Assembly: GCA_963924565.1 (NCBI GenBank)
Contig: OZ004609.1
Span: 21,266,001-21,330,000 of the forward strand
Direction: 5' to 3'
Source of the DNA: Ascidiella aspersa
Lineage: Eukaryota
Length of the DNA stretch: 64,000 nt
Part shown: piece by piece, positions 381 through 35,550 of the stretch
How the letters are laid out: every line of letters begins with the position of its first letter
How positions within the stretch are numbered: position 1 is the stretch's first letter
Notes under the pieces: generated by a model
Told to the model about the DNA's origin: nothing
Database searches by the model: none
What the model saw: only the letters and a program-made list of their open reading frames with translations
Position numbers and translations under genes: made by a program

Positions 381-9262
<8,882 letters not shown>

Positions 9263-15192: not shown

Positions 15193-16916
15193 CTTTACAG
15201 CGTATTTTCTTCTAGCTGTGTTACCTTTGGTGATTTTTAGCAAAATCACTAAAAAGCATTTCGACCTGCGCCGACTTAGCTAAAACAATAATAAGAGCTT
15301 ATTGTACTCGCCTATCTTCCATTTTCAGTTAAAACATATCGATGCTACTAAACACACTGCTTTAACTCACAAAAACACAGACACTGAATGTATCATAGGG
15401 AACATTTACAGTTGCACAAAACAGTAGCCTCCCCTCGCTTATTGGCCCGTATTCAACTATTCTCTGTTTTCAACAGTACCACGCTGCACGCCGACATTCA
15501 GTATAAAACGTTAAAACTTCTGAAAAAGAAAATGACACGGCAGCTTCACAACGGTAATGATTCGCTCCAGGAAATGAGTCGTTATGAAACATAGTTTGCT
15601 GTGTAGGCCTAATAACTTTAAAATGATCTGAAATCGACATAGCCTATTGTCGCTTATCTAACCCTGAAAGGCAATATGTGCAACAGACAAATTAGGTAAA
15701 TCAAGCTGAAATATGAGCTGATTGACTCGACTGGCAGACTGTAACCGCTATCATTAGAAATTCATAATACAAATTATATATCTGTGTTGTGCAATTCAAA
15801 CTGCACTAAATGGGGTAAAAATACGAACGGAAGCATAGTATATTTTCAAGTGGAAGCATAGTACATTTTAGAAGCGACTACGGTGTGCAATTATTATGGC
15901 AACTGAAGACAAGTTTGCACAAGCGCGAAAAAAAATCATTTGATTGATTGGGCACATGAACCGATTTGCAATATTAACCTTACATCATAAAATATTCCAC
16001 CAACCGCAAAAAATATCTTTTGCGTTTATCTTGCTTAAAAATGGAAGTAGGATAGGTGTTACTCACGATAGATTAGCAATATTGTACAGGCCATATACAT
16101 TTGCGCAAACATGAACAAAGCAACATAAACTAAATAATTTTGTAGAACTTTCATTTGTAAAAATTCTCAATCTGCGTAGCGGCGACGCTATATGCTGTGG
16201 ACTGGCTGAGCTCGGCAAACTTTTTCCGACAAATAAAACTCAAAAAGGTTTCGACGGGCTGCAAAAGCTGTGTTTGACAATTTTGTTTTTAAAAGTTTCC
16301 TTATAAGGCATCTTGTTTTAAGGGTTGTGGCCATGGGGCCGACCTATAGCAGCTATTCATTATCACAATCAAATATAGTGTAGTAAAATACTTTCTAGTT
16401 TATAAATTAATTTAAGAGGGCCAATAAACTCTCGATGTAACATATAGCTGTTCTTGTTTAAAACGACGCAATGCACTCATGGGAATCGCAATGAAATGCA
16501 TTAACGTATATTAAGATGGCGCCACTTTAATTGTTGATTGTGGTAGGACTAGAAAATACACGGCGCTTGTAGGCTAAAAAGATTTTCTCAAAGCACAAAC
16601 ATACCAGAGGTATAAATAAGCATGCGAGATTTATTTTTACGTTGTCGTGTTGAAGTACCAAAAAAATTGGAATAGCCCCCTGCCAATTTATAAAAGAGGT
16701 ACGCTGCTGTTGATTTTCGCTTAAAACTATTATTTAAACAATTTAACCAATAAAGAGTAAGAACGCCGAAAGTATGAATAAAAAAACACAATACCATTTG
16801 TTTTCAATTCATTATTATGAAACTCGATTTTTGTAAAAAATTATTTCCATAAAAAAACACCAAAATGATATATTGAATACTATTCTATGTTGTTAAAGTT
16901 TTTTTTTATGGGGTGA

Positions 16917-16928
16917 TTTGGCGCGAAA
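16917..16928. promoter_or_regulatory. Overlapping double E2F site, putative LIG1 promoter
   Basis: TTTGGCGCGAAA (reverse complement TTTCGCGCCAAA, the classic DHFR-type E2F element) ~1.2 kb upstream of a replication gene, followed by a candidate donor CAG|GTATAG at 16994/16995. Confidence 0.55.
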
Positions 16929-18123
16929 CTTGTTTGGTGGATTTTTTGTTGCTGTTTTCCTACTGCTATCATTTTTGGTGCGTAGGACGCTCAGGTATAG
17001 TTAGTGTAGAAGACGCTTTTTAGAAAGATTCAGCATTACATATTATAAAACAGTGAATTTATAAATTCTAGCGCTTTATTTTTAAAAGTGCCTACTATCG
17101 ACTAATACGCATACACTAGGGTTCCTCTTTTACCCGGATTTTTTCACTCCCGGGAAACGGGATTAACAAATAAAACTTCCCGGGAATCCTGACGAAATTT
17201 TCGTGGCCTAATTACGTCATTATGATGTTTAAAATTACTTTATGTTAGCTCTAAACGTTTAATTAAGCTGATTTATGTTCTGTAGTATTGCTTCTGCAAT
17301 CTTACAAGACGTTCTCGTAATAAAGTCAGCACCCTTATTTGTTTTTTTTAGAAAACACTCGCATACTAGGCGCATTTTTATTGGTAAAATCAATTTAATT
17401 ATGTTTTTCCGCTGGTAAGCACAAAAAAAGCAACACAAGCAACAACTTTAATAGGTTTGGTAACATTTTTTTTTCTTTATATTAGTCAAAAATGACATTT
17501 TTTTGCTATGTTGCCGAATAACCGGGATTATAAAACAAAATTTCCTATCGATTTATTGGTGGTTATACAGTGGTTTGGGTTTGGGTGGTGGTTTTATTAA
17601 ATTGATTTCCAACGTTTTGCCTTAATTCCATGACTTAATCCATTTAAGGTGCGCTCTTCACATAGAAAATAACATAGGCGCTGTGCGGTAGGACAACCCA
17701 ATTTTTTTCTGAAGCGAGTCAATGCAGTTAAGTGGACACAAACCCAGTATCGTCTGTAGAGAAGGCTATCTTTCAAAAATAAACTTACAGGGCTGACCAG
17801 CTGTGGAAATTATGGCAATTTCACCCACGAGATCACGTTGAGATCTGCCATACTTTCCAGACTGGGGGCTGATAGGGACGAATCCAGGGGAAAGAAGTAA
17901 ATATTCTTAAATCTTGATTACATTTTTAGTATGTCTGGACCTGTTTTTGTTTTACAGTAACGAAACAAGTTCTTAAAAATGAAATAAATTTGTTCTGTGG
18001 AACCCACACTTACCTAAATAAATTTCGCAATATAAACCCTGGACGAAAATGACCAATGTCCCAATTCCTACCAACACCACAACACAATGATTTACAAACA
18101 TTTTTTTACAGATGCTTTATTGA

Positions 18124-21100
18124 ATGTTTGCAGGGGCTTATTCTGGTGGACGTCTTCTGTTTAGGAAGAACCTTGTAAATTCTGTCAATAAGTCCAAACG
18201 TTTTAGATCTGTTTTCTTAAACGTGTGCTCTGGGCCATATGGACACAAATCTTGGCTAAACAGAAGATTTTTAACTAATACAAACAAGTTAGTCAAAACA
18301 ATGCCACAAAAATCAATTGCGTAAGTGTTTTGTTTTTGTCGCATGCATATATTGAGTTTTTTTAGAAATATTTTATGGACTTAAATCTTAACAGTAAAAT
18401 AAACTAATTTTGTTTCTTTGTTTTGTATACCCTTTCATGAAATATTTTTTGTAGATCATTTTTCTCCAGCAAAAGTTCCTCAAATAAACTTACAGAAACT
18501 GTAAAACCTTTAACGGATTATGTGAAATCACTTAAAGAGGAAGTTCCTAATAGTGAGAAGCCTACTAAAGTTTTAGAACCCACTTTAAATGTAAGTCCAC
18601 TAAAGAATGGAAAGCGCAAACGAAGAGCGGTACTTAGTGACTCATCTGACGATGAAGTAAGTGGGCCAGAGGTGAAAGATGAAAATGGAAAACTACCAGT
18701 TAAGGAAGAAAGTGATGTACGTAAAACTAATTTTGTCTCAGTGATAAATTTCTCACAAGCACAAATTGTACATACGGGCCATTCCATGTCAATTCACACA
18801 GTCAAGAAATTCAACCTCTCCGATTTTCCTTAAATTTTACACACCTTTTCACTATCCTATATAATGAACACCTGCAAAATTTGAGCGTAATTTGTTGAGA
18901 AATGCCAGAGTTATGAAGCTTTTAGTTTGGGGGGTTCTGCCGAGGGGGCGCAATTTTTCCATTTTGAACCATGTTTGCCGCCTTATTACTGCTAAACTAA
19001 ATAAAGTAACAACCCAATATTTTTACATGTGATAGTACTTCTAACAAATATTTAAAAAAAAAACATAGTTTACATTGTCACTCTAAAAGGTCAAAGGTCA
19101 TAGACATCCAAAGTTGGCCTTTCCCAACACTCGGCTGAAATTTTCCCTAATTTTGAAATTTCGTCAAGACCCCATTTTTAAGTGCAATTGGCTAAAAATG
19201 GGTATAAATGTTGTTTATAGGATTCTCTCTGAACTGCGAAAATTTCAGCACAAAATATTAAAGGGGTTGGGAGATATTTATTGTGAAACATGGGTTGAAA
19301 TGAAAAAAAGCAAAAAGTGGGGTCCTTTTAATATACCGGTTACCCATGACCCCAGTGAAAATTTGCACTGAAATTTTGTCCACATATTTACTAAGATATG
19401 ACAAGTCTACCATGCAAAATTAATTCATGGTTCTCAATGATTTCTGATAGAAATTCTGTGTCAAATTCGGACAAAAACGCGAAAAATTACAAATAAAAAA
19501 AATTAAAATGTATTTGTAATTGTGTTTTTAATTGTGTAGTTTTTAATTATTGTTACCTCACAAAACACAAGCACAAAACACAACTCTTGCGCGTCTAGTT
19601 TTGGCAATATAATTGTGTCAGCATATATATCACAATCAAGTTGTTTAATATTTCACAATTTTGAAAAGCTATAAAAGTGAGTTTTAGTTTGCTAGTGTAA
19701 ATTCTTTGTCATTACAGAAAACAAGGTTTTACATAGCACACCAAATGTGGCAGCGTGCCTGGCGAGAAATGCATGAATTTTTTTAAATTATACAGTAATA
19801 TGGCAAATAATAGAAAAATATTCCAGTTATTAAGTTGTACACTTGTACATTACAGTTATCAAGTATTTTTTGTGAGGTAACAATAGTTAAAAACACGATT
19901 ACAAATACATTTTAATTTTTGTTTTATTTGTAAATTTTCGCGTTTTTGTCCAAATTCGACACAGAATTTCTATCAGAAAACATTGAGAACCATGAATTAA
20001 TTTTGCATGGTAGACTTGTCATATCTTAGTAAATATGTGGACAAAATTTCAGTGCAAATTTTCACTGGGGTTATGGGTAACCGGGATATTAAAGGAACCC
20101 CACTTTTTGCTTTTTTTCATTTCAACCCATGTTTAACAATAAATATCTCCCAACCCCTTTAATATTTTGTGCTGAAAATTTCGCAGTTCAGAGAGAATCC
20201 TATAAACAACATTTCAACCCATTTTTAGCCAATTGCAATTAAAAATGGGGTCTTGACGAAATTTCAAAATTAGGGAAAATTTTAGCCGAGTGCTGGGAAA
20301 GGCCAACTTTGGATGTCTATGACCTTTGACCTTTTAGAGTGACAATGCAAACTATGTTTTTTTTTAAATATTTGGTAGAAATACTATCACATGTAAAAAT
20401 ATTGGGTTGTTACTTTATTTAATTTAGCAGTAATAAGGCGTCAAACATGGTCCAAAATGGAAAAATTGCGCCCCCTCGCGAAACCCCCAAACTAAAAGCT
20501 TCATAACTCTGGCATTTCTCAACAAATTACGCTCAAATTTTGCAGGTGTTCATTATATAGGATAGGGAAAAGGTGTGTAAAATTTAAGGAAAATCGGAGA
20601 GGTTGAATTTCTCGACTGTGTGAATTGACACGGAATGGCCCATACCCTGTATTTTCATTTTCACTTTTTCACAACCAAACAACCACACTTAAAGTAACAC
20701 AAAAAAGACTCTGAACTGAGATATACATATGTCACAGTCAGTTGGGTGTTGGTCAGTTGCCAGTCGGGCGAGTGCCAAATCCACACTCGCCTGAAATATC
20801 AGCCCTTTTTACCATGTTAGATGAACTCTTTCGATGTTGTATTTGCACCAGCATGTATTGTTAACATTTACCTATAATTAACCTATATTCATTGAAGTTA
20901 AGTTAAACATAATTTGCCACATTTTATATATATATATATATATATATTTACAGGCAAGTTCAGACTGCTCTTTAAATCCACCCAGAGATGTTAATCTAAC
21001 TCCAAATGGAACTGTAAAAAGAAAAACAGGTAATAGTTGTGTTAAATAATTGTCCCTAAAGCTTAAAGCACTTGGACTAAAAGTAAATATAAAAAATATA

Positions 21101-24100
21101 TAGCCAGTACAGTACTTTCTATTCAACCTCATGCTTGCTGTCCTAACTCATACAATTTTAACAGCGAGAAAAACTGCTCCAGCTGCTAAGAAAAAGAAGC
21201 TTTTTAATAGCAAGCCATCTGAAGTAGAAGCAGTCCAACAGGAGAAAAAGACCAAAGTATTTCTTTTTTCTTTTTTCAAAATGACCTTAATGAAAGCCCT
21301 CTCGAGGAAGCTAAAAAATATTATGCTTAAAAAGGTTAGGCTTTTAAAAAATTCTTATAAAAGCAATTTGTTGTGTTTTGCGGATTGAAGAATGGTTGTA
21401 CAGTTTTTCTTAACCGACTCTTGTATGGTTTGTGAATTTACGATGTTTTTATTTTTAGATAGATGAGAAAAATGAACCAATGCCCAAAGAGGAAGATGTT
21501 ACAAATGATACAAAGAAAGAAGTTACTGGAGATAAATCTCCTAAAAAAGTAACTAAATCAATATCAACCAGTGATTCTGAAACAAACAAAGATACTACTT
21601 CACCAAGTAGTATTAAATCCAAGAAACAGTCATCCAAAGTCAAAAAGTCAGCTGAAAAGACAAAGAAGTCTATTAAAAAAACAGCAAGCAAATCTTCCTT
21701 GTCAAATAAAAGCAGTGATTCGGGGTCTGATAGTGGAGACAAGGAAATAAAGCCCGAAAAAAAATCACCATCAAAAGCGTAATAAGTTTACTTTTCTTTG
21801 GATTTGAGTGTTGGTCCAACAAATTATTTTATATAGTACAGTACACATTTAACTAGTACTGTTTTTTCTAATTACTTATCAACTTAAATTATATAGTTGC
21901 AGCTTTGTTGACTGAATGATAACATACAATACAAGTTATTTTTATAAGACCTTTATTGGAACTGCATACCCAGCCTGATTGGGCAATTACCTAATATTAC
22001 ATGTTTTATCCAATTAGAGCAAACAGCTTTTTTCAACCAAAAAGCCAAAGCAAGAATACATCTAAAAAGGAGGAAGCAAAAGTTTCTACAAAAACAGGAT
22101 ATAATCCTGGAGCAAAGAACTATCACCCAATTGATGATGCATGCTGGAAACAAGGACAAAAGTGTGTTTTACTGTTGATTAACACTATTTTTCACTACAT
22201 TTTACTTTTTTAACATATTTCAATAGAATCCCCTACATGGCACTTGCAACTACATTTAGTCTTATTGAAGAAATATCTGGAAGGTATTTACATATTAGTT
22301 GTTTTTGATATATTTTTAGAAAATGGTATTGTCCTTCTAACTTTACAAAAAAGTTTACAAAAGTTTAAACTGTTTCTAGGTTGCGAACCATTGAAATTTT
22401 GTCCAATTTTCTTCGAAGCGTGATTGCTTTGTCACCAAATGAGCTATCAACCTGTGTTTACCTAAGTTTAAATAAACTTGGCCCTGCTTATGAAGGTGTG
22501 GAACTTGGAATCGGTGAGTTAATTAAATATATATATATATATCTAGACATAATTGGTTTTGTATAAAAACAATGATATTAACTTATTATAATAGGTAAAG
22601 CTTAGCTGTATTTAAAAGAAAAATCAGCATTTTATTTTTAAGGTAACTTTAATGTTTGTATTCACAAAAATTTAAACTTGTTGCAGGAGAGAGTTTGTTG
22701 GTAAAAGCAGTTGCTGAAACAACAGGGCGAAATGTAGCCAAGATCAAAGCAGATGTTGCTAACACTGGGGACCTTGGTATTGTGGCAGAGGTGAAGATTT
22801 TAAGTCTATACAATTGGAAACATTTTTTAGACCAGTAGCCGGACTATTATAACTGTCATTTACTACACTACATGACAAAAATATAACTTATCAAAATACT
22901 TTATTATTTACTAAAACTAGGCTGTATCTATGTACGACGTTTGTCCTGCCCCATTTAGACCACGCAAATACAAAACAAGGAAGTGTGAACTTGGGAAGAT
23001 ATATTTAAAGCAGTTTCAACTTTTTTTCCCTCGCCTAACGCACCTGCCTCGTTTTGTCCCCCAGAACAGTCGCAGCAACCAACGTATGATGTTTACTCCC
23101 GCGCCGCTCACGTTAGACGGAGTGTTTAAAAAGCTCAAGCAAATATCAGCCATTACCGGCGGATCAGTAAGTGGGATTTTTTTTATTGCAGACAAAACAA
23201 TAGAACTTTTGGCAACCTTGCGTTTTGTTAAAAAAATGTTTTGTCATTATGGGTACTAATTGACAATGTGTTTTTACAAAATTTTGAGACCTTGTCAATA
23301 ATTTATTATTTATATTACCATTAAGCAAAATATTTCTTTGTGCAGTCGATGAGCCAGAAGGTCGAACTGGTGAAAAGTCTTCTGGTTGCATGTCAAAAAT
23401 GCGAGGCAAGATACCTTATCAGGTAAGCAGTCTGTTTATATTATTATTATTATGTGAAAAATAGTTACACAAATGTACTTTATATAAAATCGACATCTAT
23501 CGTAACACCAAACTCACCGTGATGTTCCATAGTTGCAGTGGCCACTTAAAAAGTTTTGAAAACTAGTCCCAACTTTTTTAGGTCGCTTGGAGGAAAGCTA
23601 AGGATAGGACTGGCCGAGCAATCCGTGCTTGTTGCTATTGGCAACGCCGCCTTCCTAACTCCTCCTGGGCAAGGTAATATTGTATTTGCTGTTTGGCAAA
23701 AAAATGAAACAGGGTGCCCCGAAATAACACGCTTTGTAAAAGAAGATAGTATAGAATTTTAATCTGCGTGGAAACGCTTCATAGGATCATATCACCTGAA
23801 CTCTAGCACAGATCAATTACAATTTTCTAGTGTAATAGGCCATAACACCCTTCAAGATAAATACTTTTTATGTAGTAGATCCTGGCAATTTGTATTAATG
23901 TTTGGTCATTTTAAATTAAAAAAGGCTTTTTTTTTCAGAATATTGTTGCTTCATTAGTCTTATATTTGGTATGGTGCATTGCAGTGTAACGAAAACCTAA
24001 AAAAAAAAAATTTTCGCAGACTTTCCACCAAACATTTTAAACGCCGGCCAAGGCATGTCTGCTGACAGTCTAAAGGCAAAAATGGACGAAAAGGCCCTTA

Positions 24101-27100
24101 TAGTGAAAACGACGTATTGGTAAGCAATTAGATTGGAGAATTTTCTATAGGTTGTGATGTGTTGCTCCTAAACGCGAAATAACACTTTATCTAATAGTAA
24201 TATTTATGTACGATGTTCTGACGTTTTAACTTGATACCTGTTTTCACATATAAAATGAAATAGTTACAAAACATATTTGCAATTTTAAACCACTTTATGA
24301 TGTTATAGACTGGAGTTTTTCAGAATGCAGCATACGTCAAGAACTCAATTTGAAAGCTGTTTTAAGGCGCTTTCTCAACTACTGTAGGTCGGCAATATAT
24401 GCCTTGCTTACATAGGCGCCGAACTTTCGAAATCCCAGGGCGTTTTTTGAAACAGCCTTCAAAAAGGGGAGTCCCGAAATTTCAACTTAGGGCGTTCCCC
24501 TAATTTTTTGTCTGCCTAATCAAAAATGACGTCGTGTGATTGCAATATGTTATTCGGCGTTTACAATTTAGGAAATAGGTTAACACTTGTATATTCTAGC
24601 CTCAGTAATTGGCTTCACGCATCTTTTATCACAGAAGATTTTTCACTAAACATAAATTTCGCATCAGCTTAAGCTTGACCTACGTTAGCGCGACCTGGTC
24701 ATAAAGTAGTGACGGGAATGACGTTACAAAATAGTAAAGAGAATGACGTCATAAAAAATACAACCAGACACAGCCAATAAACGTCCAGCAAAAGCGAACC
24801 TTTAAGACGTAAAGCGAACTCGTGCTTTGAAACCGCTCAGTGTGCAATCGTTTACATCAGGCGAGGAACTAGACCAAGACGCTAAGTACGTGTGATTGAT
24901 TTTGGAAGAATCATAATTCGACTATTAGCAGTGCAGTTTCCCAAGTTTCATGTAAGGGACCACGCTAAATTACAAGCTAGTCTTTCGCCACCTGCAAAAC
25001 GATATCATTTTTCCGGGTTGAATTATGCCACATCTGCGCCGAGTAGTATGTCAAGTTAGCTAAAATACAAGCTGCGGTTTAGAGAAAATAAGTTGTGTCA
25101 ATTGCACACCAAACACGTGGTCTTTGGATATGAAAATAATTTTGCGGCAACTATCATTACATAAAAAAGGCGACTTTGAAAAAAACATCCCGCGTTTACG
25201 GTCGACCACACAAGACACGAAAAACAGCGTTTTGTGGTTGATTTTGGTTTTGCATTAGATAAGACGTGTGCCCAATTACATTAAAAACATTGCCGCTTTG
25301 GACGGTGAGTTAAACCCTGACAAAAACAAACAAAAAACGATAATATCACTTGCGAAAATGAGGGGGGTGCCGAACCCCCAACCAGGCCGTCAATACGCCA
25401 CCGCTCATTACCAACAAAACGTAGCAGGTCTCCCTAACCGATTTTGCGATTCCGTATATATATGTTTAAAACATCCGTTAAGTCTCATGTAATTTTGTCA
25501 GAATTAATTGTACTTCAAGATAATGCGTGCTTTGTTCTGTATTAAAATGATGAAGGACGAAGGTTAGTAGCAATCTGCTTTGAGCAGTGTTCTTAACTTA
25601 TTATCCGCCATAGCAAACGTGCAGAAGGAGCGAGCGAAGCGAGGGCAAATTTTTTGGGCTATACCGATATTAAAGATTAAAGAGACTTGTTCGAGAGGAG
25701 TCGGCGTTATTGAACGAGGATTTTTGTATATATTTGGCGTTTAAAAGCTTATGTTCGGAATATTACGTCTATTTATCGATTTGAGTGACCAAACGTCTTA
25801 GCATTTTAAACACTAGGAATTATGACTCTAGACCAGTGGTTCTTAACCTTTTTTCTTTCGTGGCCCATTTTCGTTTCACATAAATTTTGTGGCCCAATAA
25901 TTTTTTATGAAAAAACAAACTATAAAAAAGGTTTAGAACAAAAAATAGTGGAGCATATATCAAAACAGATTATTATTTATTCAACCGTGCATTAGTGAGG
26001 TACTTGCTTCTGAACAATAAATTTACGTTTCATTTACATCCCTAGCCATTATTCCTGTAAAATTAGGTATAGTGACACAAATGAAACTAAATTCTTCAAT
26101 AAATCTAGCTTTTTTTAATTTTTCTGTGGTCCACCTAAAAAGCTTCCATGGCCCACCAGTGAGCCATGGCCCACTGGTTGAGAACCGCTGCTCTAGACAA
26201 AGCAATATGTTATTCGGCGTTTACAATTTAGGAAATAGGTTAACACTTGTATATTTTAGCCTCAGTAATTGGCTTCACGCATCTTTTATCACAGAAGATT
26301 TTTCGCTAAACATAAATTTCGCATCAGCTTAAGCTTGACCTACGTTAACGCGACCTGGTATTTCGTATTTTCAGCGCCGCTTCGGTTTATTAGGTGCGAA
26401 AACGAACACTTTCGCATATGGTGTTTCTCCCCATGTAATTCAGGAAAGTCGCGCATACTGTTAGTGAACCACGATTGTGCTTCTAGCAGTGTCCATTGCG
26501 CTAGCTTTGATATATGGTTCACATAAGTGGAGTTGCACACTAATTGCGCCTGAAACCAGGTCGAATTTCAGGGCGTTTTGACGCCCTGCAAGAAATCCAG
26601 GGCGTCAAAAAACGCTCTGCACACCCACGTTCGGCGCCTATACTTGCTTACCATGTTTCGCGTATTTTAGCGAACTACCAAACTACGATGTAATCATCAG
26701 TAAAATGACCGAGCATGGAATCGACGCACTTCCCCAGCATTGCAAACTCACTCCAGGTGACCCACTTTCTAATTTCGTTTAAAAAATAAAAATACATTGA
26801 GCTTTGATTGTTTTCAAACGTACTCTTTTTTTTGGCGAAAAAACAAACACCACACTTCGAAGTAAGGTCCCGGTCTGAGTGTTACTTAGCTGGTGTTCAC
26901 TGTTCTCTGATGACATTATTACTTTGTGTCATGTTGCTTATATTTCGGCACTCAAGTCAAAATAATGGCCTAAACCCACTAGCATTGATACTAAAGAAAC
27001 TTAGCATCTAAAAATTAAGAAACAATCCTTTTTCATATATAAAGATATAGATAGCAGAAAAGTGTCATTTTTATCAAAACGACAGGAATTCCTCTCAAAC

Positions 27101-30100
27101 CAATGCTGGCTCACCCGACCAAGGGGGTGTCCGAGGTGCTGAGCAGATTCGAGAAAAGCGCATTCACGTGCGAATACAAGTACGACGGCGAGAGAGCGCA
27201 AATCCACGTCCTGGAAAGTGGCGAGGTAGTGTACTTGTATTTAAGGAATTTGAAGTTCTAGTGGTTCAACTCATTACTAGTCCTACACTAGGTGGGTGCC
27301 ACCGATCCGACGGATTTTACCCACGGAAGGCGATTAAACGCAACGTATACGCTAAGTCAGTCGTTCTTTGACGTTTTTTTATATTTCTCCCTTACAAATC
27401 CAAATACTGTCAATTCCTCTGCAGTAAAATACACAAAACTATTCCACTTTTCTTTAGTTTCGATGAACCCTGCTGACAGAAAACCAAACCTACAAACCTA
27501 CAGTGAAACAGACACCAATTTTTTTTTTAATTTTGAAAATATTGCATGTAAAACGACAAGAAACACATATGCGCCAAATAAAGACTGACCCAAGTGAAGA
27601 AAAAAGTTAAACGAGATTTTTTTATGCATTTAAATGCCCAGTTTTATCTCCTTATCTTAGTATAAAGTGGTTTTACAGTCTTAACAAATGTGTTAACCGC
27701 ATTGAAGCAGTACTTCGATAAATTTTTTACTTGCTGTACATTAACGGGTCTTTTTTTAACAATTTTTAGCAGGACACTTATAAATTTAAACGTTTTTTGT
27801 TTCCTTATTACCAAATTTTGCGGTTTTACGGTCTTTGTGAAAAGTCTAAAGACGCTTCAAATTCTGGGTGTTTTGCGTTGGTTACCCAAACCATGGCGGA
27901 TCAGATGACATTGCGTGTTTTAACGAAATGGCATTTAGAAAATGAAATCCGAAAGTGTTATCTTGTACTTTATGCAAAATGAAAAAATGTATCAAAAATA
28001 TGTAAGGTTTCGAAAAGTAAAAAAGTATTTGTGAAAGTTAAGGTTTACTTGAGCACTGAGCAGGCATTAGGACCAGAAAACATTTAAAGCTGTGCGCCAT
28101 TCAAAAGGTAACCCAAAGAATAAATCAGGTTGATCCCTGTCAGGTAATTATTACTCGGTATTGGGACTGCACATCATTTAATAATGTTTTTCTACAAAAA
28201 ACGAAAACGCTTGGTGCTACTTAAATTCTTCAAAAGTTTATCGATTATTTTTTTTACTTTTGATGCTTTAGTTTAGCTCTTAATGCGTTACTATGACGTG
28301 CTTGCTCTTTATACTAAATACAGGTGAAAATATACAGTCGAAACCAGGAGGATAACACAACCAAGTATCCAGATATCGTGGCTCGCATTCCTTCAGTAAG
28401 TTATATTTTATCGTCACTCTTGCGTACAAACTTCGACACTCAAGAAGTTACATAAAATGCTATTTTGCTTTCTAAATCTAACCTCTAAACTTTGTTGATT
28501 ATGATTTACGTTTTGATTTCTTTTTTGTTGATTAATTGCAAACTTTTTGCGTCAGGCTCTTGGCGATGATGTCAAATCTTGCGTCATCGATTCGGAAGCA
28601 GTCGCCTGGGACCCGGAAAAGAAGCGAATCCTCCCATTTCAGGTATTCGACGAATGGAAACTGAAATCCATGTTATCGCTTAACGTGAAACTCCACTCTG
28701 TTACTGGGGTTGCTTATGGTTAATTAAATATAAGTAACGCAGTAGAATGTTTCCATAATTTTAATCAAAAGCAACAAATCTTTTTCATATGTTTATCAAA
28801 TCTTATGCAAGACCGCGTTTTAAAACTTGAAAGCACTGAAAATGACTGTTAGCAATGCTGCAAGTAATATTCTACAGAGTTATAAATTATTAAATTCTCG
28901 TTGAACATATGTAAATTGAGCGACAAAAAAAATGTTTTTAGGTTCTCACAACGCGAAAGAGAAAGGACGCCGATGTGTCATCTATAAAAGTCCATGTTTG
29001 CATCTACGCCTTTGATCTTTTATATCTGAATGGAGAGGCGAGTAAAGCAAGATCTCTGCAAAATCGATCAACATATCTTCTCAACACAAACCATGCTGTC
29101 CGCCACTTTAAAATTTATTGCTTAACTAATTTGTATTTTTAGATTTTATTTTGTCAAGTCGAGTAACTTAAGAATATTGCCTTTCCTTCACAACAAAAAT
29201 AAAAGTTCGTAAAAACAAACAATTCAGGTTTATAAGGCGTTTCATAACATTTGTTAATTCGTTTTAATGGTCACCGGGTGTCATGAGCGAGGACTGAATA
29301 GTTTAAGCACTAAGCAGTTAAACAAAACTTTTAATACATAACCTACATTTTATTAACATCAGAACTTATATACATATTACCATAAAAAATATTGCTTGTC
29401 CCCCTAAGTGGCGTTGACTATTTTACTTGTACCTCAAGTAGCCATAGAATTAACGACATGATTACGATTGCAGTCCCTGGTCCGCCAGCCGTTTAGGAAG
29501 CGACGCCAACTGCTGTTGGACAACCTTAAAGAAGTCGAAGGACAGCTCGTGTTCGCCAAACACCGCGACACCAACGATACAGAAGAGATCGCCGAGTTTC
29601 TCGAAGATTCTGTACAGGGTTAGTTTTCATAGAGTGGTGTTGAATAGTAACAAACATTGGCAAACATTGGTATTTGATAAGTAGGGTAGTAACGACTTAT
29701 ACTCGCCTCGGCTTCGGGGACTTGTTTAGGGGATCTTGTTTAGTGTTAGAGAAATCAGGTGGCACTGTATAAAGATAAAGAAGATTGTATTTGATTCTTC
29801 ATCAGGTCAAAGTATAAATGAAAACAATTAAAATGAACGTAAAAGCACAGGCGCAAGTAAAAGGCGATAAGAATGTGCGAAGGCTTGTCGAGAATCAAAT
29901 ACAATTTGTCTTTATACAGTGCCACCTGATTTCTCTATTTAGAATTAGGACAAATACGGCCATATACAATGTTTAGTATTAGTAATCTCTTTAAATGTCG
30001 ATTTTCGCTTTTATTTTTTTTTTTAATTTTGCTTTTACTAAAACTAAAATTAAATAAGGTATCACACGTTTACTTTTTTATTGGTCAACAATCCCATATT

Positions 30101-32953
30101 TTCTCGCTGTAATGCAGCTAAACTAAAAAAATACCACACCTCTAGAAAGAATTGTCTCCTCGACAAGAGTAAAGTAAAACTTGTGTTTCATTTTTTTGTG
30201 TTATCTCCAGGAAATTGCGAAGGTCTGATGGTCAAAACCCTGGACATAGATGCAACTTACGAAATAGCCAAACGGTCGCACAACTGGCTAAAAGTCAAAA
30301 AGGTATCGCTTGAACAAGAAATGTATTTATTGGAGAATTGCGACACACAGGCTGTGTTGCTCATAACGACGCTTAAAAGGACTGCGACTGTAACAAGTAT
30401 CAACCTACTGTCTTCTAAAATAAGAAAACTTTTTTTACTGATAAATGGTTGGAGTGAACTGCCTTCACCATGATTCGCTCCACACTGTGTTTCGCCATTT
30501 TTGGACATACAGCATTTTTTAAACAAACTGCATCACCGAGGCAATTAACGCAATAGCCCTGGAAAAGAACGCAGCGGCAATCAGACTTAAAAAACAAGAT
30601 AATTCTAGTTGCCTAGTTCAACGAATGAGAGTGACATGCTGGTAATTTTTACTAGTTTGTGCTGATGTACCCCAACTCAGTTCTAATCTAATTTTTGACG
30701 GTCTTGCTTCACGCTTACAGTACTGCTTAACAGCACTTTCCCTTGTGGAAATAAAATACAACATGTTACCACAGGACTACCTGGAGGGCATGGGTGACAC
30801 TCTTGATCTTGTGGTAATTGGAGGTTACCGGGGCAAGGGCAAGAGGGTCGGCACCTACGGAGGATTTCTTCTCGCCTGTTACGACGAAGAGAGCGAGGAA
30901 TACCAGAGCATTTGCAAGGTGAATTTACCAAACTTTTTTTTGTTTAATTAGAGCCTATATTAAAAAACGAATTCAATTAGGTAGCAAACATAGTTCCCTT
31001 CGTAATACTAAACTTTGACGCCACGTCTATAAACTTAAATCTTGTCTAAAAACTTTTTTTTTTGGTAATAAATATAAACTACCAAGCCATGTCAACTAGT
31101 TCGATATATATCTTTCTAGATTCATTTTGGCGAAAGAAACGTTAGTTTCTTAGTTTCTATTCACGTTTTGCAGATTTATGTAATTAATTATATAATTTAA
31201 TATATTTCGGAAAAGTGCCTTAACGAAACTCGTGCTAATTATCAATTTGAAAGCGTGTTTTACTTTAATACTTTGATGTAAAAGTGTAAAGAAAATTGGG
31301 CCCACCTAAATGTATAAATAAATGGCCTTGTCGATCGTCCTATTTAAAATTTTTAAGAACTGAATTTACATTTACGTCACACGACCTATTTTGAGAGCAT
31401 GCAGAGCGTTAAAACGCGTGAATAAACATAACGAACAAAGTTATTTGCTAAGCGGTTCGCCTAAAGGGCACCACGTTGTGTATAATTTCACGTTTGCCTT
31501 TGCTTACAACCATGCAATGTTAAATCCATTTGTAGATTTGTTTATTATGTTTATGTTTCGCAAACATTTTTTGTCTAAATAACCTAATTTAACTTGCAGA
31601 TTGGAACAGGATTCACAGACCAAAGTCTAGCCGAGCATGCGACTTTCTTCAAAGAACATTTGATCGATCAACCAAAATCGTATTACAGGTCTCGTAGATT
31701 TTATAAAAGAAAAATTTCAGTTTTATAAATATATAAATATTATAAAATTTCTTGACAAATTGGAAGTGCAAAATATTAAACACAAAGAATATTTAGCACC
31801 ATGTTTAAACCTTCAAATACAGTTTGACTTGTGTAAGCTATAAACTAGTCGCAATTCAACAGGATTTAAAGTGGGACAGATTGAACTTTTGTCTATGACG
31901 CAACAATTTAAGACTTATATTTTTACGTCTCCCTAATTCGGGTTACATCTTGAACTTATTAAAGACAGTTTTTGTTTTAATGCCTTTGAATTTTCTGCGG
32001 TGTTTCTGACATGATGTTTAATATGAATTACCGCAGGCTAAATGACAGCCAAGCTGACCAGTGGTTCGAGCCAGTTCAAGTGTGGGAAGTTAAAGCGGCC
32101 GATTTGTCGGTATCTCCGGTTTACGCGGCAGCAAACGGCATCGTAAGTGGCAGCTCCCTGCCAAAACCACACGTTGCTTGTGACCTAATTAACTTTGGTG
32201 GTTTGTCGATTCCTGGCAATGTTGTCTGACGCGTTTCTCATCTTGGTGGTTAATTTTAATCAATCGATTTCAAGCAGTATCGGATTCTCTAATATAAGCC
32301 GTAGGGGATAGTAATGAAATTGTCAAATTAATGGTGTCATAAAGATAGCCGAGTATAAAACTGGCCTAGAACTTATGGGTTTTTTTGCCAGAACTCTTAA
32401 ATCGGTTTGAAGTACATTTACATAATTCGGGAGAAACTTACCCGACAAAACAACTTAAAAACTATAACTGTAAATCTACTTGCCAAATGTTTACATTGGG
32501 AGTAAAAATGCTGTTTGCTGGCTTTATTGTAGGTTGACCCACAAAAGGGTATTTCTCTGCGCTTTCCGCGATTCATTCGAATAAGGGATGACAAGAAAAC
32601 CGAACAAGCAACCAGCAGCATTCAGGTAAAGAGTGGAACTTTAAAAACTCCGTGATTTGCTTCTCTTTCATTGCTATTAGGGTGTGACATCCAACGACTA
32701 GAAGGCACTTTTGTTTTACAATTAAAAGGCAATGCCATTAAAATTTATATTTGTCATAATAACCTGTCATGTTATTCAGTTACCTATCTTTCCATATATA
32801 TATATATTAAACAATGTAACAAATAAAACGATGTACAATTAAGTGAAGGATTTTTTTGTATTACATTAGGTGGCAGAGATGTATCAAACACAACAACAAA
32901 TACAGAACCAACTGAAAGACAAGGAATCAAACAAAGATACTGATTTTTATTGA
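18124..32953 (+). CDS. LIG1: DNA ligase I, complete, 25 coding exons; alternative starts 18124 (extended form) and 18301 (PIP-box form)
   Basis: Frame-consistent exons 18124-18320, 18455-18716, 20954-21029, 21165-21256, 21459-21778, 22018-22161, 22227-22283, 22380-22513, 22687-22790, 23065-23166, 23346-23422, 23582-23673, 24020-24119, 26671-26756, 27086-27225, 28324-28395, 28556-28642, 28942-29037, 29474-29618, 30211-30302, 30775-30918, 31600-31688, 32037-32142, 32533-32625, 32870-32953 (TGA). Motifs: PIP box [20 protein letters not shown], active site [43 protein letters not shown]. Confidence 0.97.
18776..20641. mobile_element. Foldback element with ~780-bp terminal inverted arms (non-autonomous, Sola2-like by termini/TSD)
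   Basis: GGGCCATTCC...GGAATGGCCC termini; arms ~18776-19565 and ~19867-20641 are near-identical reverse complements; 4-bp TSD ATAC (18772-18775, 20642-20645); ~300-bp spacer; no transposase ORF. Confidence 0.9.
24411..26642. mobile_element. Composite non-autonomous hAT-like element in LIG1 intron
   Basis: TIR CATAGGCGCCGAAC / GTTCGGCGCCTATA; perfect TSD CTTGCTTA (24403-24410, 26643-26650); contains reversed family A core, a ~157-bp internal direct repeat (24542-24698, 26202-26359) and a nested MITE. Confidence 0.85.
25834..26190. mobile_element. Nested hAT/Charlie-type MITE
   Basis: TIR CAGTGGTTCTTAACC / GGTTGAGAACCGCTG; perfect TSD CTCTAGAC (25826-25833, 26191-26198), matching the NTCTAGAN Charlie target preference. 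Confidence 0.9.
29747..29937. mobile_element. Small MITE / hairpin, ~190 bp
   Basis: Perfect 29-bp inverted repeat TAGAGAAATCAGGTGGCACTGTATAAAGA, extended imperfectly by ATTGTATTTGATTCT. Confidence 0.75.
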
Positions 32954-34049: not shown

Positions 34050-34979
34050 TTAAAAAGTGTGAATACCAAATGCTTTACGAATTTCCTCATTCATTATCCA
34101 AAAAATAACTGACCATGGTGCAATGCGGGACCAGATAGGCACAAATCCCTTGTAAAGGCTCAAAACACCTTCTTGCTTTAGGGTCTTTGTTAGACAATCA
34201 AAGGAGGAAGTATAAAACACACCTTTACCTTGTTTGTCTCTCGCTTGGTTCATCATGCGAGTCTTTATAACGTCAGCCGGTGTTCCTAACACTGCTGCAG
34301 CAAATCCACTACATGTGCTGGCAAGCATGTGGCAAACCCAATTGTCTTTTAAAGTGGACAACCTGAGAATATTTTGTTTTGCAACATCATAAGTTGTTAA
34401 ATTGCCAATGTTTACTAATGCAGCTCGTTGTACATTTGGCACCCAACCTGCCCATAAACCTTTAAGTCCACCACTCTTGTATGCTAAACATAGGGCATGG
34501 TTGACAGAATTTGTTGTATTATGAGTTACCAATTTCGCACAATTGGAATTTTCAAGTTGCATTCTTACTTTTAATAAGTCCATTGGGCTGGCAATTAGCT
34601 GCCCTACTGCACCTGAAATTGCCCCAACCAGAGCAGCTTTCCAAACTGGAAAAGATCCGTCCTTTCTTCGTCCAAAGACGTCATCCCGCAACTTTTCATA
34701 AAGTACTGTCCTTATGCTTGTGTAAATAATATGCCTGTAAACGGCAGGCTGTACCCCACTCCACAACTTTGTAATTCCCTCTTTTGTCACAACGCTGTAG
34801 GCTGTTCTTATCATTCCGTGTTTTTGCAAAAAAGCTCCATGCCCGTTGGATGCAACCTCGCCTTGAACCTGAAGTCTGGTTTTGGTTAAATCCAGTGGAA
34901 AAGTCGCACATTCTGCAATGGCGGAAGCGCCACCAGAAGCACAGAGCTTCAGCAGTATAGTTCTTACTTCATCTGACAT
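34050..34979 (-). CDS. SLC25A27: Mitochondrial uncoupling protein 4-like carrier, divergent tandem copy (309 aa, intronless CDS)
   Basis: Three carrier signatures [24 protein letters not shown]; UCP4-type [13 protein letters not shown] and [16 protein letters not shown]. Confidence 0.9.
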   Translation of the reverse strand: MSDEVRTILLKLCASGGASAIAECATFPLDLTKTRLQVQGEVASNGHGAFLQKHGMIRTAYSVVTKEGITKLWSGVQPAVYRHIIYTSIRTVLYEKLRDDVFGRRKDGSFPVWKAALVGAISGAVGQLIASPMDLLKVRMQLENSNCAKLVTHNTTNSVNHALCLAYKSGGLKGLWAGWVPNVQRAALVNIGNLTTYDVAKQNILRLSTLKDNWVCHMLASTCSGFAAAVLGTPADVIKTRMMNQARDKQGKGVFYTSSFDCLTKTLKQEGVLSLYKGFVPIWSRIAPWSVIFWIMNEEIRKAFGIHTF

Positions 34980-35550
34980 CCTACTGAAAAAAATGTTTTG
35001 ACCATCTATTTAATTCCAGGGTAATTAGACGGCCTGATTCTGCAAGTAATTTACAATAAAGTATTACATCTCCAACATAAAAACGCAAATAAACGGGTAA
35101 ACGTAACTTGAACTCCCTTTGGCACAACACAAGGAATACCAGCGCCCAACAAACGTTTGACAGACATGCAGAGCTTATGCCCCAGTCTCACGCTTACTAC
35201 ATTCTGTTGTCCACGCATGGATGATTATAGCCTTTGTAGACTAGATCATATAATACTAAATATATTATATAATATGCCAAAGTCTCCACAGAAATGCATT
35301 TAAACCAAGGCCAACAACGGCTATAGTTGTTAAAGCCGTAACCTTTTTTGATACAAATTTATAAAACAATAAACTTAATTTGCCAAAGTGTATTATAGTT
35401 ATACCTAACCAATGGGGCCAGGTTGCAGGCCAAAACCGAACTCAAAAAAGGTCACTGAGTTTGGAAAGCCAAAGCCGCGAAAAACACTTGATAGATTTTA
35501 ATGAGAGCTGGTAATTATTAGGCAAACGCGCATTATAACGGTATAACGAC

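Follow-up and report, generated by a model that had tools for sequence, protein, structure and literature searches.

A candidate mitochondrial presequence ahead of the PCNA-binding motif of LIG1 in the ascidian Ascidiella aspersa, a genome in which LIG3 has no leader

The choice of the enzyme that seals mitochondrial DNA (mtDNA) is usually treated as a fixed split, with LIG1 serving in fungi and plants and LIG3 in those animals that have LIG3. Tunicates, to which the genome described here belongs, are the closest living relatives of vertebrates. An engineered mitochondrial LIG1 was reportedly able to rescue the loss of Lig3 in mouse cells in the work of Simsek et al. from 2011, and a mitochondrially targeted LIG1 can accordingly take over from LIG3 in mammalian mitochondria (both as summarised in PMC12526102). 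CDC9 of Saccharomyces cerevisiae and LIG1 of Arabidopsis thaliana give rise to mitochondrial and nuclear forms from two in-frame AUGs (cited in PMC2708163 and PMC3457046). The subject of the present analysis is the LIG1 gene lying in a stretch of 64,000 nucleotides of Ascidiella aspersa (assembly GCA_963924565.1, contig OZ004609.1, positions 21,266,001 to 21,330,000 of the forward strand), here called the window and numbered from its first letter. The first exon of this gene holds two in-frame start codons, and the evidence inclines somewhat to the reading that this animal makes a dual-targeted LIG1 by alternative initiation and that this LIG1 takes the place of a leaderless LIG3 in the mitochondria.

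The two starts are separated by 177 nucleotides. The ATG at 18124, directly preceded by an in-frame TGA (18121-18123), opens 59 codons without a stop, which lead in the same frame to the ATG at 18301; this extension (18124..18300, forward strand), documented by its sequence, its composition and RNA at 18170, is the candidate mitochondrial presequence. The second ATG begins the residues MPQKSIA (18301..18320, forward strand) and is taken as the start of nuclear LIG1; exon 1 ends at 18320, as 21 spliced reads indicate, and exon 2, beginning at 18455, reads on as SFF, therefore the PCNA-binding motif (PIP box) is QKSIASFF and spans the exon 1-2 junction. Its counterparts in vertebrate LIG1 are MQRSIRSFF (P0174) and MQRSIASFF (P0198). 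The original prediction, made from the letters of the window alone, had announced a stop-free extension of 59 codons in frame with the PIP-box ATG, and the sequence matches it letter for letter. It had also called the first start weak and the second strong, which agrees with T at -3 and T at +4 around the ATG at 18124 against A at -3 and C at +4 (ACAATGC) around the ATG at 18301.

Judged by its sequence, the gene is orthologous to LIG1: it has the PIP box at its N-terminus and a catalytic core of the LIG1 type. The active-site exon (27085-27228, KYDGERAQ) matches solved chains of human DNA ligase 1 with an E value of about 1e-23, and among the solved chains of LIG3 and LIG4 none reaches 1e-5 with it. 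Sixteen exons encoding the DNA-binding, adenylation and OB-fold parts (22381..32628, forward strand) align with a vertebrate LIG1 in tblastn, the exons having been searched one by one, and the Pfam family PF01068 is found in the window. When the entire genome (308.6 Mb in 75 contigs) was searched with Pfam, three loci of ATP-dependent ligases came up: the present one, LIG3, and a third that matches solved chains of DNA ligase 4 and is LIG4.

The note from which this work started had expected that LIG1 would ligate mtDNA in this lineage, possibly together with a loss of LIG3 or of its targeting signal; the anatomy of the reading frame and the missing LIG3 leader stand on the side of that proposal, and the accompanying loss of the LIG3 gene does not. 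An intact LIG3 is present at G000:C1:15082607-15085285 (L001:709-3387, minus strand) as a single frame of 893 codons on genomic DNA, with a PARP-type zinc finger (PF00645) and the ligase core (PF01068), by which gene loss is ruled out. Its closest relatives are found in Clavelina lepadiformis (69 % identity) and Ciona intestinalis (68 %), followed by C. savignyi and Styela clava, within a range of 64-69 %; all of them are tunicate, and therefore the genome is that of an ascidian tunicate.

The loss of the LIG3 targeting signal, on the other hand, is supported. Ahead of the zinc-finger Met (MSDTSNF.CDYAKRK) of this LIG3 there is room for at most 15 residues, among them a single Lys and not one Arg, and inside those very codons, 21 nucleotides ahead of the ATG, lies a good acceptor site (…TTATATTGCAG). 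Within 7.9 kb upstream of the gene no presequence-like exon with a phase-0 donor was found. All 14 of the best tunicate LIG3 matches retrieved likewise begin at the zinc-finger Met, one of them with nine extra residues; this set comprises NCBI models, four genomic contigs from ENA of 0.5-1.4 Mb and short, transcript-like Logan contigs. Outside tunicates, leaders of 55-105 mostly basic residues stand before the same Met in two amphioxus entries, the hemichordate Glandiceps, the brachiopod Lingula, Xenopus, a bird and four mammals. Since amphioxus, hemichordate and Lingula have it, the design of a leader followed by an internal Met predates vertebrates, and it is missing in tunicates. The full-length LIG3 is a single open reading frame (ORF) also on the four ENA contigs (P0004, P0006, P0008, P0009), so that tunicate LIG3, here and in four further assemblies, appears to be without introns, which suggests a retrocopy that lost its 5' part. 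The lost targeting signal independently leads one to expect that some other ligase has a mitochondrial form, and with LIG3 leaderless throughout the tunicates retrieved, LIG1 is likely to be the mtDNA ligase of the lineage, as in yeast and plants.

The extension itself has the looks of a presequence in its composition. Among its 59 residues 6 Arg, 6 Lys, 9 Ser/Thr and 7 Leu are counted, with no Asp or Glu, which gives a net charge of +12; the 12 basic residues, the absence of acidic ones and the RRF-L stretch named in the original prediction were all present on recount. This net positive, acid-free composition with hydroxylated residues is that of a presequence. The LIG3 leaders of amphioxus carry a charge of +10 and no acidic residue, so the extension equals or exceeds them, and it is more extreme than the LIG3 leaders of vertebrates. 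From R48 it reads R-F-L-T-N-T-N-K-L-V, a run which, judged by eye against the R-10/R-2 consensus, is compatible with a processing context of that type; cleavage at this motif would put the mature N-terminus two residues ahead of the nuclear Met.

The rarity of such a pattern can be estimated within the window, where both strands hold 2112 ATGs, 118 of which stay open for 59 codons. Two of these 118 frames, the target counted among them, combine the lack of acidic residues with at least 12 Lys/Arg, and the same two charge properties are joined in 8 of 577 stop-free windows of 59 residues drawn from the genome. For one named gene, the pattern is roughly a 1 in 1000 event or rarer, and LIG1 is the very gene in which such an arrangement is already known from other kingdoms.

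Transcription of the region was followed in one stranded RNA run that bears the same species label and comes from another sample; about 6 % of the run was read and mapped to 16300-22299. On the sense strand the depth is 0 in 17900-18099, 17.9 in 18100-18299 and 31.5 in 18500-18699, and five introns in the mapped region are confirmed by reads, among them 18321-18454. RNA covers the extension from 18170 at the latest, therefore at least 131 of its 177 nucleotides, that is at least two thirds, are in the mRNA. At 18170 all eight RNA reads have G, whereas the assembly and its DNA contigs have A (AAC to AGC, Asn16 to Ser); because the RNA is from another sample, the difference is probably allelic and not a result of editing. 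The stranded reads contain no splice into exon 1 from upstream and no joint in 16300-18100, and an upstream cis-spliced exon joining 18112 or 18134 was rejected on these reads.

The mRNA probably gains its 5' end through trans-splicing of a spliced leader at or near 18112. The Ciona-type spliced leader of 16 nucleotides followed by GT has 573 exact or near-exact copies in the genome, compared with 0 and 1 for the reversed-pattern control. They lie at G000:C3:5218799-5450447 and in other places (L014-L017), mostly in tandem arrays of 584 bp on both strands, and these are the gene clusters of spliced-leader RNA of this ascidian. Trans-splicing affects the majority of genes in Ciona, where preference is given to the first functional acceptor and minor ones are often found no more than 50 bp away from the major site (PMC11155486). 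Two acceptor-like sites precede or overlap the first start of LIG1. Site A (18092..18111, forward strand), consisting of seven T and then ACAG and lying where the RNA depth steps up from one bin to the next, is a candidate trans-splice acceptor or lies near the transcription start; if it were used, the mRNA would begin at 18112 and keep the ATG at 18124. Site B (18114..18133, forward strand; ...TGTTTGCAG) resembles the acceptor that lies 21 nucleotides before the LIG3 ATG. The chance that the ATG at 18124 is present in a sizeable share of the mRNA is estimated at about two in three.

For a dual-targeted LIG1 the following course of events is proposed. The mRNA, probably trans-spliced at or near 18112, would hold both in-frame AUGs, and the first of them, in its poor context and behind an ORF of three codons, would be used by a minority of ribosomes. 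The product would be LIG1 with a basic, acid-free mitochondrial presequence of 59 residues, which would be removed near residues 49-57, and the majority of ribosomes would scan on, or reinitiate, at the AUG at 18301 and make the nuclear form that binds PCNA. The mitochondrial role of LIG3 would in this manner have been handed over to LIG1.

It can also be supposed that the extension is an untranslated 5' leader, open and basic by chance. The ATG at 18124 would then be cut off with the outron (18133/18134), lie ahead of the start of the transcript or be skipped, only the PIP-box LIG1 would be made, and mtDNA would be sealed otherwise, for instance by LIG3 with an unrecognised signal. Several observations speak for this supposition and weigh against a mitochondrial LIG1. 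The reads bound the 5' end to between about 18100 and about 18170, a range inside which the ATG at 18124 falls, and at 18170 itself there are 8 reads, compared with a depth of about 28-31 further on. Site B is no worse in appearance than the acceptor of LIG3, and its use would start the mRNA at 18134 and remove the ATG at 18124; hand estimates and a fragmentation simulation show that the depth in bins of 200 nucleotides fits a start at 18100/18112 and one at 18134 alike. The best hydrophobic moment of the extension over 18 residues is 0.36, which is ordinary for random open frames here (0.39 +/- 0.11), and its codon log-likelihood ratio of -3.0 is like that of non-coding ORFs (-6.8 +/- 6.4) and not that of coding windows (18.1 +/- 5.9). 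Random frames in AT-rich DNA are poor in Asp and Glu, 39 of the 577 open windows from the genome being without any, and a scan of many genes would now and then meet such a pattern by chance. Finally, LIG3 could still enter mitochondria through a signal of an unrecognised kind.

The codon score of the extension mostly reflects its lack of acidic codons; a synonymous-only score, from which amino-acid composition is removed, falls between the coding and non-coding distributions, and codon-usage tests are uninformative for a presequence. A chance leader has to account for the joint occurrence of an ATG start, an open frame, no acidic residue and 12 or more basic ones, met with in about 1 in 1000 ATGs, and for its occurrence in precisely the gene whose function it would suit, within a lineage that has a leaderless LIG3. 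Site B as the sole acceptor would, moreover, leave a leader of 167 nucleotides with an upstream out-of-frame AUG. Taken with the evidence on both sides, a leader that is open by chance is rather unlikely.

A further explanation accepts the use of the AUG at 18124 and denies import: the extension would act as a translational throttle on LIG1, by in-frame upstream initiation together with two small upstream ORFs, or as a basic nucleolar or other sorting tag. Both small ORFs are in fact present and flank the region. One has three codons (ATG CTT TAT TGA; 18112..18123, forward strand), is in the same frame and abuts the ATG at 18124 with its stop, so it may lower the use of this ATG and would be part of an mRNA that starts at 18112; the other, of six codons, is out of frame and lies between the two in-frame ATGs (18239..18259, forward strand, start ATG 18239). 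The richness of the extension in Lys, Arg and Asn and its modest amphipathic signal would suit this explanation too. Against this, there is no positive evidence for a role of either kind, the pattern is the classical one of a presequence (acid-free, with Arg, Ser/Thr and Leu and, close ahead of the nuclear Met, a motif resembling a processing site), and LIG3 leaves the mitochondria in need of a ligase. An explanation of this sort is regarded as quite improbable, and dual targeting of LIG1 is preferred to it.

When the LIG1 and LIG3 observations are brought together, a wider scenario can be drawn, which is offered as tentative and on the whole doubtful. In it the LIG3 of the tunicate ancestor became intronless, possibly as a 5'-truncated retrocopy, and lost its leader; the sealing of mtDNA passed to LIG1, whose mitochondrial form would be set by the choice between two trans-splice acceptors 22 nucleotides apart and by leaky scanning past a weak AUG.

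Intron 1 (18321..18454, forward strand) is a GT..AG intron of 134 nucleotides, the joint from 18320 to 18455 being carried by the 21 stranded reads with 17 start places. Exon 2 (18455..18716, forward strand; depth 31.5 in 18500-18699) encodes SFF, a linker rich in Ser and Lys, a basic patch KRKRR and an acidic patch SDSSDDE, and its 3' end at 18716 is assigned from a GTACGT donor. High-copy repeats lie beside exon 1 (17100-17900) and fill intron 2 (18700-20700), with a word depth in DNA contigs of up to 23,740 compared with about 50 for single-copy sequence. The sense reads at 17100-17900 fall on these repeats, and the sparse sense and antisense RNA in them has loose ends at 17832 and 17865 and comes from other copies. 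Upstream on the same strand a copine gene is located (6662-9259, forward strand); about 9 kb of repeat-rich DNA stand between it and LIG1, which is therefore not the downstream gene of an operon. Downstream, on the opposite strand, there is a single-exon mitochondrial carrier (UCP-like, 319 codons; 34053-35009, minus strand).

Relatives' LIG1 N-termini were sought as well. A protein search with exon 1 yielded no candidate, and the protein collections offer distant relatives, the nearest being about 69 % identical even for LIG3. A conserved LIG1 exon, searched against the whole library, gave no full-length tunicate LIG1 and returned exon-sized fragments together with vertebrate, priapulid, fluke, nematode, glaucophyte and foraminiferan proteins. 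A tunicate-like LIG1 was met on two JGI metagenome contigs, L018:2640-11297 (Ga0210059_1000458) and L019 (JGI24159J19872_10016561), with 87 %, 71 % and 81 % identity to the window in three DNA-binding exons, the first of them being the one at 87 %. The two contigs hold clear homologues of exons 3 and 4, share the exons with PPRD..TPNGT.KRKT and ARK.AP.AKKKKLF with the window, and do not extend to exons 1 and 2, their locus opening within the intron that precedes exon 3; they are host-derived, probably from another tunicate sequenced with its microbiome. Among the other proteins, the LIG1 of the foraminiferan Nonionella stella (P0241, EukProt) has a basic N-terminus which is acid-free over its first 50 residues (MLLLNLIRSQAPRWKLRRS...), and it may be another LIG1 that bears a presequence.

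If tunicate LIG3 is indeed only nuclear and LIG1 is imported, the reliance of vertebrates on a mitochondrial LIG3 would be a choice of their lineage and not a constant of chordates. The mitochondrial ligase would have been swapped inside the chordates, with the choice of a spliced-leader acceptor as the isoform switch, and the presence or absence of an encoded targeting signal would depend on where the trans-splice acceptor lies. Ascidian embryos, which are easily electroporated, would then be a natural system for the study of ligase interchangeability in mitochondria.

Three described systems come close to the arrangement proposed here. Vertebrate LIG3 shares with it the two in-frame AUGs and a leader, of about 55-105 residues, before an internal Met from which the nuclear form begins; it differs in being the other paralogue, and its leader is absent from the LIG3 of this genome and from the 14 tunicate LIG3 proteins. 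The engineered LIG1 of mouse cells indicates that LIG1, once given a presequence, is able to serve the mitochondria of a chordate cell; it is an artificial construct, whereas the ascidian arrangement would be natural. CDC9 and Arabidopsis LIG1 are members of the same LIG1 family, and in them an upstream in-frame AUG in the weaker context adds a basic presequence and the downstream AUG gives the nuclear form. In contrast to yeast and Arabidopsis, which are without LIG3, this ascidian keeps LIG1, LIG3 and LIG4, the 5' end of its LIG1 mRNA is probably produced by trans-splicing, a tiny upstream ORF abuts the first AUG, and the case is known from sequence and RNA reads. What would be new is the layout of CDC9 and Arabidopsis LIG1 in a chordate that retains LIG3 and in which trans-splicing probably fixes where the mRNA begins.

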